Positions 49,535-60,492 of a stretch of 64,000 bases of DNA are shown in pieces. The DNA comes from Monocercomonoides exilis PA203. Taxonomy: Eukaryota > Protista > Preaxostyla. Position 1 is the first letter of the stretch. The number at the start of each line of letters is the position of its first letter. The stretch lies in assembly GCA_001643675.2 (NCBI GenBank), contig LSRY02000007.1, forward strand, positions 248,001-312,000, read 5' to 3'. The position numbers and the translations under genes are program-made. The notes under the pieces were generated by a model that searched no databases, was not told the DNA's origin, and was given only the letters and a program-made list of their open reading frames with translations.

Positions 49535-52500
49535 ATGGCTGCGCAAGGTAATATGTCAAAAGATCTATTTCAAACAGTTCGTGACATTTCGTTTGAAAAG
49601 GTGCTTGAACATATAAAAGCTGGCAACATACTCTCAATACGTGATGTAAAGCTAATAGTGCAAAATGCTACAAGTATTTTTTCTTCTGAAGAAAATTGCG
49701 TGAATGTAAAAGATGAAAATATTCGTATTATTGGAGATACACATGGTTTTTCCATTTTTGTTCATTTGTTTGTGGAAACGTTTCGTAATTTATTTTCTTT
49801 AATTTAAAAGGAACACTGAAAAACATTGATGACATTTTTTCAACTGAAATATTAAATCAATATTCTCAAGTATTTCTTGGGAATTATGTCAATCGTGGCG
49901 AAAATTCATGTGAATGGCTTTTACTTCTTTATACAGCAAAAATATGCTATTCTTCAAAGACTTATCTTCTTCGCGGAAATCACGAATGTGAATTGATGTG
50001 CAGACGTTTTGAATTTTATAAGGAGTGCACTCAGAAATACAATGAAGAGATTTTTCAACTTTTCTTGAGTTCTTTTCATGCACTTCCTCTTGCTGCTGTC
50101 GCAAGTGATGGGAGATTCTTTTGCGTTCATGGCGGATTATCTCCACGTATTGGAACGGTTTATTTTTTGAATTGAGAATATTATATCATATATTAATTTT
50201 TTATTTTGTTTACTTGCTACTTTCAATTTAGTTGGAAGAACTGTCAAAAATAAACAGACACACAGAAATTGAAAAAGATGATGCCATTGCTGATCTTCTT
50301 TGGAGTGATCCACTTCCTTTGAGCTCTCCAATGACAGCTGAAGAGAAAAATGTTTATTTTCTGCCAAATACAAAGCGTGGGATTGGCTTTTTCTTTGGGT
50401 TTGTTCTGCTTTTATTTTCTTCAATTGTATCTATTTGCTGGATTATATTCTCTATTTCTATTTGGGTATTTTAATTTGAATTCTACCTTTTTATTTAAAA
50501 AAAAATATCCAATCTGAATGCTCATTTTTAGGCCTAAAGCGATTGATGCCTTTCTCGGAAACAACCATTTCATCGCTCTTATCCGCTCTAACCAATACTC
50601 TCAGCGTGGTCTGCTGTTGGCACACACAAAAAGCGCAGGGTTTCCGTCTGTGGTGACAATTTTCTCATCGCCGAATTTTCTGGGGCTGATGAAGAACAGA
50701 GGATACATTGCAATTGTGAAGGACCAAGTGTTGAGCTTCACGAAAATGGTGAGTGCACAAGCAAATTCAAATACTTCCGCTCAAACACCATCAACTCAAC
50801 AGTCTGCAACAGCAACAACAACAACAGCAGCAACAACAGCAGCAACAACAGCAGCAACAACAGCAGCAACAACAACAACATCATCATCATCATCATCTCA
50901 ATCTTCATCTCAGATGCCTCCATCTAATTCCAATTTAGTGAGTGAAAGGACTCTTCCTCAGTCAAATGAGCAAGGCATTGCATCATTCATCGAAGCCAAT
51001 TCACTCCACCGCCTTTTCCCTTTCGCAAAATCGCCTGTTGAATCTCTGCTCCGGCTGTATCTCCAAAACGTGCCTCAAAATGCACTTTCGTCTGGACAGC
51101 CTTCAGAAAACACACAACAAACAACGAAATCTTCGGAAGGGCAACAAAACACGTCTTCTGAAGCATCGCAGCAGACATACACAAATCCAAATGCACAAAT
51201 AAGCCAGCCGAATGCTGCTAATGTTAACAATACTCCTTTTTCTCTGCCTCCACCGCCGCCTCCTCCACCTTCTTCTGTATCTGCTGCAAGTGCTGCTACT
51301 TCTAATGCTTCTTCTTCTGTTCCTTCTTCTTCTTCTGTTCCTTCTTCTTCTTCTTTATCTTCTTCTTCTTCTTTGGTTGATTCTCTTCCACCGTATTTGA
51401 AGTGGTTTCTGCAGATGGCAAGCACGTTTGAAGGAGTTGCAGCACTCGATGCAATCAATCAGAGATGGCCAGAAGGAATCAAAGAGGAAATGAAAAGCGA
51501 AGAGAAAGAAGAGAAAGAGAAAGAGAAAGAGAAGGAGAAGGAGAAGGAGAAAGAGAAAGAGAAAGAGAAAGAGAAGGAGAAGGAGAAGGAGAAAGATAAG
51601 GTGAAAGAAAAAGAAAAAGAAAAAGATGAGAAAGATAAAGAAGTGAAAGAAAAAGAGATAGAGAAAGAAAAGATGAAAGAAAATGAGAAAGAAAAGGAGA
51701 AGGAGAAAGAGAAGGAGAAAGAAGAAAAAGAAAGAAAAAGAAGGGAGGACGAGGAAGGAGAAATGAGAAGAAAAGAAAAGAAAGAAAGAAAAGAAAAGAA
51801 AAGAAAAGAAGAAAACGAAGACAAAGAAAAAGAAAAAGACAAAGACAAAGAAAAAGAAAAAGAAAAAGAAAAAGAAAAAGAAAAAGAAAAAAAGATCCAA
51901 AAAGAAGACGAAGAAGCGAATATTGAGAAAGAAGAAAAGCAATCAGAAGCACGCAACACAGAAAAGGATGTTGCAATCCCTCAAACAGAAGAAAGGGACA
52001 AGAAAGCTGAAGAATCGAATGAAACAAGTGAAAATGCGAAGAAGGACGATAAAGAGAACAAAGAAACACAAAGTCAGAAAACAATTCTGACAACTGTGGA
52101 AAACATGCCTGAAGCAGCGAATGATAAAAATGAGAATGAAAAAAAAGAGAAAGAAGAGAAAGAAGAACAAAAGGAAGCAGAAGAAAATTCGAATAATCAA
52201 AACAAAACGAATGAAACAGCAGAACATTCAAATGAAATGGCAAAAGAACCAGAAAATTTGAAGAAAGAATCAAACGAAAAGGACAGCAATGCTTCTTCAG
52301 CAGACGCAACATCAGAAATTGCACAGGAAGAAACAGAGAACAACAACACTTCCATTCCATCGACATCACCTGAGATTCATTCAGAGAATGAAACAGCTGA
52401 GCAAAAGGATTCCAATCAACAATCAACAGATGAAAGAGAACAAACATCAATGACAGCAACAGCCTCAGAAACGTCAATTACAACAACTGCAACATCTTCT

Positions 52501-58500: not shown

Positions 58501-60492
58501 AAGGACAAAGAAAACACACAAGAGAATGAAGCATCTGAGGAGACGAAGAGCCAAGAGCAAGACAATGGAGCAATTGACAACAAAGAAATACACAAGAGAT
58601 TGGAGTTGGCGATTGTGAAACACAATTTTGAGAGTATTTTTGATGGCAGCTTTGAGGAATTTGTGAACAATCTGAGATCGAAAAAAGACAACGACAAAAA
58701 GGAAGATCCTGAAAATGAATCGCAACAAGCTCAAACAAAGAAAAAGAAAAAGTTGAAGACTGGAGATGAAGCAGAGCAGAGCCAACATTCATCAGAAGAC
58801 AAAGAAAAATCCTCATCTGACTCAACTTCCTTTGATTACAATGTTTTATCTCTTTCTTCCATCATTGAGACGCCTCAATTAAAGCGTGTATATCTCTCTC
58901 TTCTTCGATACTATCTATTCCCAATCACTTCAATTGTGCTTCCTGACACACTTCACTCTTCTGCTTCTGCCTCTTCATCAACAGAGCCTTCATCATCTTC
59001 ATCTTCTCCTTCTTCTCCTTCTTCTCCTTCTTCTCCTTCTTCCTCTCCTTCTTCACAAGACTCCACAGCTTCTGCTGCTGAGATACTCACATTTCACATA
59101 CCACTCACAAAACTGATGCCTTTCTCGCAATCGTTGCTGAGCCAGCCTGAAAGTGCCAGCATTTCTCAGACAAGCACAAAAGAGCAGGCAGCTGAACCAG
59201 CAGCGTTTGACAAGGAATCAACGATTGTCACCTCCCAGTCATCTGAGCCATATGTCCTCACACCCTCTGCTAATTCTGCCTTCAGCCTTCTTCCTCCTCT
59301 CCAGCGCTTGTCTTCACCTGCAGCCCCGCCTCTGTCTATGATTATGTCGCAGCCTCTTTCATACTCTCAGTCATCTCCTCCGTTTTCTGCTTTTTCTCCT
59401 CCAACTCCAGCCATTTCTCAGACACTTTCACAGCTGAATTCTGCATCTACGCTGTGCTTTGTGGTCAAAGCAGCCATTCAAGAAGTTCGACTCCATCATC
59501 TTCCCTCTGCTTCTGATCAGCCAATTAACAATTCGACTATTCCTTTTTGCTGTCTGCCGTTCTGCCTAAAATGCAATCAGCTCTGCCAATGGATAGATGC
59601 AGATGATGAAGTTGGGAAAGAAAACAATGAAAAGAATGAACACGAAAGAGAATCGGGTGAATCAAACGTGATCGTAAAAGCAAGTGCTGAACCACAAGTT
59701 CGAAGGAAAAGAGGAAGGCCACGAAAAACTGACAATAATTTAAGCGAAGCTTCAAAAGCGGATAAAAGAGATAATTCTTCTGATGCCTCGATGAAGCCAA
59801 CAAAGAGAAGGAGGAGCCAAGTTATTGATTCATCAATAAAAACGACTTCATCATCTTCTTCATCTTCTTCATCATCTTTATCAACATCTGAAGAAGAGCT
59901 TTCTACAAAGAGAATGATGAATACCAATTCCTCTCCCCCAAACAGTCAAAACACAAAGAAATACAAACAATGCTTCAAATGTCCTTCTTGTAATTTGCAG
60001 TTCCATCCAACGTCGATGTCAGAAGAAGAGGAAAAGAATGTTAAATGGGAATGGAACGTATCATTTCTGTTGTATGATCCATATTCTATTGATCTGTTTC
60101 CTACGTCTGTGCAAAGTCATTCTTCGACTGTATCTTCTCAGGCAGAACCTGAAGCAAACTCATCACTAAATAATGAATTTTCGACTCTTCATTCATTGAA
60201 ATGTTCTCTTTCTTCTGATTCTGCATCTCTTTTCTTTGGCGCACAGCCAACAAACCTCTTCACTTCAACAAGCACCGCCAATCGTGTTGCATTTTGCTTC
60301 CAGAAATTCCATGTCTTTGATTTTGGAGACGCTCTTCATTCTTCTTTGGACAGAGACAGCCGCAAAGCATCAGCACATTCTGGTGGCTGCAGCTGCAGGG
60401 CTTGTTTGGCCAGGCGCCCCAGGTCGCTCTTCGGCATCTGCCACTCAGACTCCTCTTATTCCATTATAAGCACCTCGGTTTCTATGAAATGA
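49535..60492 (+). CDS. Fusion: calcineurin A-derived pseudophosphatase + charged linker + POT1/TEBP-alpha-like OB-fold module, ~3561 aa; exons 49535-49745, 49811-50157, 50232-50398, 50532-60492
   Basis: Three GT-AG introns assemble GDTHG, GNYVNRG, RGNHE, VHGGLSP, DLLWSDP and GFPSVVTIFSSPNF. The last exon is one stop-free 9.96-kb frame holding the end of the phosphatase domain, an autoinhibitory-like FEGVAALDAINQRWP and three POT1-like OB segments. Confidence 0.8.

Follow-up and report, generated by a model that had tools for sequence, protein, structure and literature searches.

Rif1-PP1 and other adaptors recruit active PP1 to telomeres non-covalently, and we know of no described telomere end-binding protein from an oxymonad. 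Proteins of the POT1/TEBP-alpha type (PF02765 plus PF16686; human POT1, S. pombe Pot1, Oxytricha TEBP-alpha) bind the telomeric G-strand overhang sequence-specifically and are canonically ~500-650 aa long, with OB1 and OB2 adjacent as a bipartite DNA-binding domain and a C-terminal OB3 that contacts TPP1/TEBP-beta. The OB3/HJRL region of human POT1 has a four-Cys zinc site (PMC5394241). Pseudophosphatases of the PPP class occur in the kinetoplastid and Entamoeba phosphatomes, where a PPP fold whose metal-binding motifs have degraded presumably serves as a binding module. Monocercomonoides exilis is a protist without a mitochondrion; telomeres of strain PA203 have been probed with (TTAGGG)n (genome paper), and the same paper makes no mention of POT1.

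The window analysed here (64,000 nucleotides of contig LSRY02000007.1, positions 248,001 to 312,000) contains a fused open reading frame that links a calcineurin-type domain to a POT1-like module. A calcineurin-type phosphatase joined to a POT1-like protein is a new domain combination; as the earlier note had supposed, the literature searched describes no calcineurin-POT1 fusion. A four-exon splice model read off the DNA gives a protein of ~3,561 aa (Table 1), matching the ~3560 aa first proposed. Our preferred reading, on which we are evenly divided, is a single four-exon gene for a pseudophosphatase, a ~1,400-aa linker and an ssDNA-binding OB module of POT1/TEBP-alpha type.

Table 1. Features of the fusion locus (positions within the 64,000-nt window).
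Feature	Position	Strand	Character	Basis
Exon 1	49535..49745	+	PPP N-terminal part with start codon; ends IIGDTH(G)	sequence reading
Exon 2	49811..50157	+	PPP core: GNYVNRG, intact GNHE, intact HGG	
Exon 3	50232..50398	+	PPP core carrying LLWSDP	sequence reading
Exon 4	50532..60492	+	9.96 kb without internal stop; TGA stop at 60490-60492 included	
Catalytic-domain end	50533..50760	+	calcineurin-A-specific; RSNQ replaces RAHE/RGHE, His metal ligand gone	
Linker	50761..54950	+	~1,400 aa, low complexity	composition and stop counts
Start of module shared with C11 paralog	54950..55440	+	Pro/Leu/Phe motif	aligns with C11 residues 33-60
OB1, POT1/TEBP-alpha-like	55441..56100	+	interrupted by two poly-Ser/low-complexity loops	alignment with paralogs
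OB2-like block	56764..56976	+	LFDP..GHEL..VVE ... EGTCLRL; most conserved block of the family	
Two short blocks common to C11 paralog	57670-57753, 58846-58944	+	no known family	
C-terminal conserved domain	59440..60489	+	36% identical to C11	alignment with C11
Poly(A) signal AATAAA	60516-60521	+	canonical; 24 nt past stop, T-rich stretch after	

Exon 1 ends at a phase-1 junction with a donor GT at 49746, exon 4 is preceded by AG at 50530-50531, and the exon phases join into GDTHG, LGNYVNRG, RGNHEC, VHGGLSP and LLWSDP. All three introns use GTTT donors. The AATAAA downstream of the stop codon matches the poly(A) signal described for M. exilis (PMC8767320), and a signal with the right context is found only just after 60492. 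An exact-sequence look-up of the open reading frame returned no record, and searches with the spliced protein took one exon at a time.

In the N-terminal domain, exon 2 matches Pfam Metallophos (E 1.8e-14) and the core exon matches PP2B and PP1 structures in the PDB at ~1e-24 to 1e-34 (phmmer). The families separate in the final 76 aa of the catalytic domain, where PP2B is found at 1.6e-8 to 1e-7 and PP5, which ranks next, at 0.08; this upholds the calcineurin A identity given by the earlier note. By sequence the domain is thus of calcineurin-A (PP2B) type, nearest to PP2B among the PPP phosphatases. Its dinuclear metal-centre motif set is incomplete when compared with calcineurins in the PDB and with the genome's own paralogs: three residues of the catalytic or metal-ligand class are replaced, both Asp of GDxVDRG by Asn (GNYVNRG) and the His of RAHE/RGHE by Asn (RSNQ). 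The two canonical calcineurin-A-like paralogs of the genome (C35 and C5) keep RGHE at the site of RSNQ, and GDYVDRG is kept in a canonical paralog where the fusion gene has GNYVNRG. Because the residues that the same-genome canonical paralogs keep are lost, the PPP domain of the fusion is probably a pseudophosphatase. When phmmer aligns the fusion with calcineurin A chains of full length, the match ends at query residue 68, the end of the catalytic domain, and sequence searches with phmmer, which short helices could escape, detected neither a CnB-binding helix nor a calmodulin site nor an autoinhibitory segment. The proposal that a phospho- or Ca-signalling scaffold is tethered to chromosome ends is weakened by the three replacements and by the lack of a detectable CnB, CaM or AID tail; an active phospho-signalling enzyme at chromosome ends is unlikely because catalytic and metal-ligand residues are missing. 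The dead calcineurin-A-derived domain may instead serve as a binding or docking module.

The C-terminal module (~1,840 aa) is a member of a three-paralog, lineage-specific family of giant proteins. From ~54.95 kb onwards the fusion protein is collinear with a stand-alone paralog of 1,417 aa (C11), whose N-terminal motif and final residues both fall within the match, and partially collinear with a second paralog of 1,614 aa (C50). The fusion would have originated when a pseudophosphatase and linker became attached to the N-terminus of one paralog. Word-indexed homologue searches with the whole C11 paralog and with the C-terminal 1,694 aa of the fusion gave zero matches, low-complexity words having probably swamped the candidates. 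An exhaustive HMMER search with an OB1-OB2 profile gave as its sole match a 274-aa metagenome fragment (P0001), which aligns to the OB2-like block and sits on a 1.5-kb scaffold of uninformative context.

Pfam POT1 (PF02765) is the top match for OB1 of the fusion (22.5 bits, E 1.1e-4, profile positions 28-103) and for the C11 paralog (24.4 bits, E 2.8e-5); both scores lie below the gathering score of 29 bits, the two matches cover complementary halves of the profile, and C50 has no match to it. Every protein-language-model neighbour of C11 OB1 is a POT1 cluster (score 0.95; 189-198 of 256 features shared). AlphaFold models the paralog OB1 as an OB barrel (pLDDT 60-82), and in a Foldseek search of the PDB with this model 17 of the 20 top matches are TEBP-alpha, human POT1 or S. 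pombe Pot1 (E ~1e-4), with hSSB1 also among the best; fold matches in the ESM Atlas include POT1 clusters (TM 0.62 by target). OB1 is therefore an OB fold as modelled, and its likeness to POT1 has moderate support. For the paralog OB1 these results are in line with the earlier expectation that AlphaFold and Foldseek would return a POT1/TEBP OB fold, and the claim that OB1 follows POT1 is supported moderately by its top Pfam match, sub-threshold in score, its language-model neighbours and its Foldseek ranking. Scanned in six frames for PF02765, the 82-Mb genome yields C11 as its sole candidate, and beyond the three paralogs no POT1 candidate is detectable in the M. exilis genome. The corresponding scans for PF16686/POT1PC, CTC1 (PF15489), Stn1 and Ten1 found nothing, but their controls were also silent, so these blanks say little.

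The OB2-like block is 60% identical to C11 and 50% to C50 (BLASTP). Its strand pattern is OB-like, it is modelled by AlphaFold at pLDDT < 40, and it matches no Pfam family, PF16686 included. PDB profile matches of this block, one GPN-GTPase by chance and weak BRCA2, were not taken as a family. What had been called a fit to OB2 of POT1 reduces to a conserved block with no POT1, TEBP, RPA or CTC1 signal. The same holds for the C-terminal domain, described earlier as a zinc-bearing OB3 that fits POT1: POT1, TEBP, RPA and CTC1 signals are absent and no folded HJRL-like domain is detected between its CxxC pairs. These pairs (59563-59574 and 59980-59991) are kept in two paralogs and are separated by ~135 aa of low complexity that include basic clusters and a RGRPRK resembling an AT-hook (Pfam AT_hook weak, E 0.22). 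The AlphaFold model of the C-terminal domain is unusable (pLDDT 34.5), there is no usable atlas feature match, and a PDB profile match to a zinc finger was rejected as chance. Across the whole module, POT1PC, POT1_C_insert and HJRL give no match. The peptide strings quoted in the earlier note are nevertheless present in all three of the blocks to which it had assigned them.

Homology of the module to POT1 thus has moderate support. That the module is instead a lineage-specific ssDNA- or RNA-binding OB protein of RPA, hSSB1, CTC1 or BRCA2 type, neither POT1 nor telomeric, with its POT1 likeness due to generic OB patterns, is possible though on the unlikely side. Against it, POT1/TEBP is ranked first by Pfam, by language-model features and by Foldseek each; the fusion locus has no Pfam CTC1 or Rep_fac-A_C signal, the genome-wide matches to Rep_fac-A_C (PF08646) lying at other loci only; and hhalign of the C-terminal domain alignment with DBD-C of the genome's own RPA1 gives a probability of 0.1%.

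The open reading frame spans 50518-60492 (+), or 3,324 codons. Counted in 600-nt bins over 50518-60117, the main frame has no stops and the other two forward frames have 1-22 each, the Lys/Glu tracts included, which rules out an open frame arising as a by-product of purine-rich repeats. The counts bear out the claim that a single stop-free exon holds the end of the phosphatase domain and the OB segments, and from this continuous frame the fusion would be expressed as one polypeptide. It is unlikely that the frame, continuous as it is, serves two units, with a promoter or start inside it, near 54.9 kb, giving a stand-alone POT1-like protein and the full fusion being rare or the upstream part differently spliced or terminated. 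The shared N-terminal motif does lie ~30 residues from the start of the C11 paralog, an in-frame ATG is found ~22 codons upstream of that motif in the fusion gene, a GTGAGT resembling the consensus occurs at 50749, past the catalytic domain, and some long fused models are contradicted by transcript data (assembly paper). However, a transcript from upstream meets no in-frame stop before 60490, the gene's real introns (n = 3) have GTTT and not GTGAGT donors, and the open reading frame contains no AT-rich, intergenic-like stretch; its lowest-GC bins are purine-rich and coding, and flanking intergenic DNA has a GC content of 25-31%.

The linker that joins the two halves has no match to any Pfam family and is probably disordered. 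Ser/Thr/Gln/Pro tracts (50.8-51.5 and 52.3-52.9 kb) alternate in it with Lys/Glu tracts (51.5-52.3 and 52.9-54.9 kb), and its repeats are imperfect, with units of 6-42 nt. An assembly artefact, with two loci wrongly joined or an indel persisting within the Lys/Glu repeats of this nanopore assembly, is very improbable: a purine-rich stretch of 4 kb with such low complexity is prone to error and the authors hand-corrected some scaffolds (assembly paper), but repeat collapse is unlikely because the repeats match at only 60-90%, a chimeric join or indel would usually break a frame that here stays open while the others are full of stops, and Illumina reads were used to polish the assembly (assembly paper).

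If the locus is a single gene of the kind we prefer, its C-terminal module most likely binds ssDNA, plausibly a TTAGGG-type G-overhang; both this and the docking role of the dead phosphatase are inferred. A further reading, quite unlikely in our view, is that a giant, highly diverged POT1 family caps the ends of M. exilis chromosomes and that the pseudophosphatase of one member docks calcineurin B or calcineurin substrates of the PxIxIT/LxVP type. In that case partners in Ca2+/phospho-signalling would be tied directly to the overhang of the telomere, a link not known to be described in any eukaryote. Should the family be the POT1 lineage of this group, the range of POT1 architecture would extend from ~500-650 aa to 1,400-3,500 aa, and the family would offer an entry point to the telomere biology of an amitochondriate eukaryote. 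A calcineurin-derived dead PPP domain on an OB-fold DNA-binding protein would also exemplify the natural reuse of such a domain as a binding module on a tether. Were the POT1 assignment or the idea of one transcript to prove wrong, the locus would come down to an ordinary giant gene, lineage-specific and of low complexity.

Compared with calcineurin A, the fusion protein likewise has GDxHG, GNHE and HGG, and its domain shares ~35-40% identity with the canonical calcineurin-A-like genes of M. exilis, but it differs in GNYVNRG and RSNQ and in the ~3,200 unrelated residues that follow. With the PPP pseudophosphatases it would share a PPP fold with degraded metal-binding motifs; it differs from them in being calcineurin-A-derived and covalently joined to an OB-fold protein, and no pseudophosphatase-OB-fold combination is described in the literature searched. 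The idea in common with Rif1-PP1, a phosphatase-type module at chromosome ends, is an analogy, the M. exilis domain being fused and probably inactive. The N-terminal OB of the module shares the POT1-type sequence pattern of POT1/TEBP-alpha, whereas the module is three times longer than canonical POT1, the three paralogs span 1,400-1,850 aa, the next conserved block lies ~200 aa from OB1, and one paralog bears a pseudophosphatase and a 1,400-aa linker. The CxxC...CxxC arrangement of the module recalls the zinc site of human POT1 OB3/HJRL, with intervening sequence that in M. exilis is of low complexity.

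In the window, the ORF listing contains a single 3,324-codon ORF at 50518-60492 on the + strand, and its translation includes every peptide string quoted in the earlier note. Three short, AT-rich introns with GTTT donors separate the exons of the gene, and their phases join the coding segments into a continuous PPP phosphatase domain (table). The full product is ~3,561 aa and its frame is free of stops, which confirms the ~3560-aa fused frame claimed before. No 600-nt bin contains a stop in the main frame; the other two + frames show 1-22 per bin, also within the Lys/Glu tracts of the linker, and these stops, present in every bin, rule out an open frame that is an artefact of composition. 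The linker repeats are imperfect (60-90% matches). A minus-strand pair of adjoining ORFs (47835-49293; 291 and 212 aa) ends ~240 nt upstream of the ATG; both ORFs probably belong, as exons, to a neighbour that is transcribed divergently and shares a short AT-rich promoter region with the gene.

Exons of the window gene, and related genes on other contigs of the M. exilis genome (L002, L008, L018 and L019 are the stretches around the genes on contigs C11, C50, C35 and C5)
Feature	Position	Strand	Remarks
Exon 1	49535-49745	+	ATG at 49535; model taken from upstream DNA
Exon 2	49811-50157	+	model taken from upstream DNA
Exon 3	50232-50398	+	model taken from upstream DNA
Exon 4	start 50532	+	AG acceptor at 50530-50531
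C11 paralog	C11 about 205006-209259 (L002:3007-7260)	- in L002	1,417-aa ORF
C50 paralog	C50 about 205488-210332 (L008:2989-7833)	+ in L008	1,614 aa
Calcineurin-A-like gene	C35:163759-166974 (L018)		GDYVDRG and RGHE intact
Calcineurin-A-like gene	C5:1331276-1334491 (L019)		GDYVDRG and RGHE intact

The fusion is solid at the DNA level: one stop-free frame runs from the last part of the catalytic domain through the entire OB module, no AT-rich intergenic-like gap intervenes, and the sole well-placed poly(A) signal follows 60492. This signal (AATAAA plus a T-rich stretch, 24 nt past the ORF end) is of the type described for M. exilis (PMC8767320). An internal start, by which the OB module is used apart from the phosphatase part, is possible since an in-frame Met lies ~22 codons ahead of the motif matching the beginning of the C11 paralog; the assembly paper also reports some long fused models at odds with transcripts (PMC8767320). 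Directly past the catalytic-domain end, at 50749-50754, is a consensus-like donor, GTGAGT, that could mark an alternative splice; the three real introns use GTTT.

Exon 2 matches Pfam Metallophos (E 1.8e-14) and, among PDB chains, PP2B and PP1 (about 1e-24). In exon 4, the initial 76 aa point specifically to calcineurin A, with E-values of 1.6e-8 to 1e-7 vs 0.08 for PP5, the next family. In the alignments the window gene has GNYVNRG where calcineurins have GDYVDRG, and RSNQ where they have RAHE; at the three replaced positions the family has an Asp bridging the metals, a second Asp orienting the catalytic His, and a His that serves as a metal ligand. These alignments show that catalytic residues have been lost, and a pseudophosphatase is the most likely identity of the domain. 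The loss is derived in this gene, since the calcineurin-A-like genes on C35 and C5 keep both motifs. These two are identical across the 76 aa compared and may represent a recent duplication or a segment repeated on two contigs. The phmmer alignments to full-length calcineurin A end where the catalytic domain ends, with no CnB-binding helix, calmodulin site or autoinhibitory segment detectable by this search.

A six-frame scan of the genome (82,301,135 bases, 101 contigs) with Pfam POT1 gives one candidate, the C11 paralog, whose ORF is preceded by an AT-rich region and has no phosphatase. Collinearity between the C11 protein and the window ORF begins at a short Pro/Leu/Phe motif, directly past the Lys/Glu tracts, and continues across OB1, the OB2-like block and then two blocks in the middle as far as the last residues. 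In the C11 protein OB1 is cleaner and OB2 carries a long insert of poly-Ser/Ala; its C-terminus likewise has the CxxC...CxxC domain. The C50 paralog has OB1, OB2 and one later block in common with the window gene, not the C-terminus, which is different, very Ser-rich and without the CxxC domain. Because both paralogs share blocks of the module, the window gene is one of a three-gene family and its sole member with a phosphatase and linker in front. The sole relative outside the genome is P0001, a 274-aa ORF from an ENA metagenome scaffold (L010, 1,531 bases), which matches the OB2 block (E 6e-8) and presumably comes from another oxymonad-like eukaryote; the accessible collections yield no further relatives beyond this short fragment.

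Pfam POT1 is the best match of both the window OB1 (E 1.1e-4, 22.5 bits, profile positions 28-103) and the C11 paralog (E 2.8e-5, 24.4 bits, positions 1-53), with both scores under the gathering score of 29; the C50 paralog has no match to this profile. When the C11 OB1 is searched by language-model features, the top-ranked clusters are all POT1 (0.95, 189-198 of 256 features shared), and POT1 clusters are among those listed by an ESM Atlas fold search. In the AlphaFold model computed from the three-paralog alignment, OB1 forms a barrel of five strands plus a helix at pLDDT 60-82, and everything outside OB1 stays below 40. When this barrel is compared with the PDB by Foldseek, hSSB1 takes first place, and TEBP-alpha, human POT1 or S. 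pombe Pot1 account for 17 of the top 20 (E about 1e-4). Exhaustive HMMER profile searching of 1.84 billion proteins retrieves no POT1, its sole match being the same-family metagenome fragment, and the OB1 profile against PDB sequences gives CTC1 matches only, all insignificant. We consider it likely that OB1 is a POT1/TEBP homolog.

The OB2-like block, ~200 aa past OB1 and not adjacent to it, is more conserved than any other part of the family (60% identity to C11). Its strand pattern is OB-like; Pfam and PDB searches assign it to no family, and no structural assignment is confident. The C-terminal block has two conserved CxxC pairs and 36% identity between two paralogs, gives no atlas, PDB, Rep_fac-A_C or CTC1 signal, and its AlphaFold model (pLDDT 34.5) is too low for use. 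Four cysteines of human POT1 coordinate zinc between OB3 and the HJRL insert (PMC5394241), whereas the window gene's ~135 aa between the CxxC pairs are low-complexity with an AT-hook-like motif. This motif, RGRPRK, and basic clusters resembling nuclear localisation signals lie at about 59700-59960; the C11 paralog has similar clusters in the same place. The interpretation in the earlier note is supported in part: it stands for the fused frame and is plausible for a POT1-like OB1; its OB2 and Zn-bearing OB3, for which the searches give no family or confident structural signal, remain conjecture, and its phosphatase lacks catalytic residues.

Expressed as one chain, the product would be a POT1-like protein, putatively ssDNA-binding, joined by a long flexible tether to a calcineurin-derived domain that would no longer hydrolyse phosphate and perhaps retains partner binding, a docking role. 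We hold this reading, a POT1-like ssDNA-binding protein with a tethered pseudophosphatase, to be evenly balanced between right and wrong. Binding to telomeres is plausible; the further-reaching reading, in which the product caps chromosome ends and brings its own calcineurin-type docking module, seems improbable. Telomere-capped contigs are reported in the nanopore assembly of M. exilis PA203 (PMC8767320), and the earlier genome paper, in which POT1 is not mentioned, used (TTAGGG)n as telomere probe.

The literature searched describes no calcineurin-POT1 fusion, in line with the earlier note, which knew of none, and the gene appears to be a new domain combination together with a very divergent, enlarged POT1-like family. 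Its likeness to POT1/TEBP-alpha is confined to OB1. It resembles calcineurin A in fold and subfamily but not in catalysis or regulation, and PPP pseudophosphatases are among the closest known kinds.
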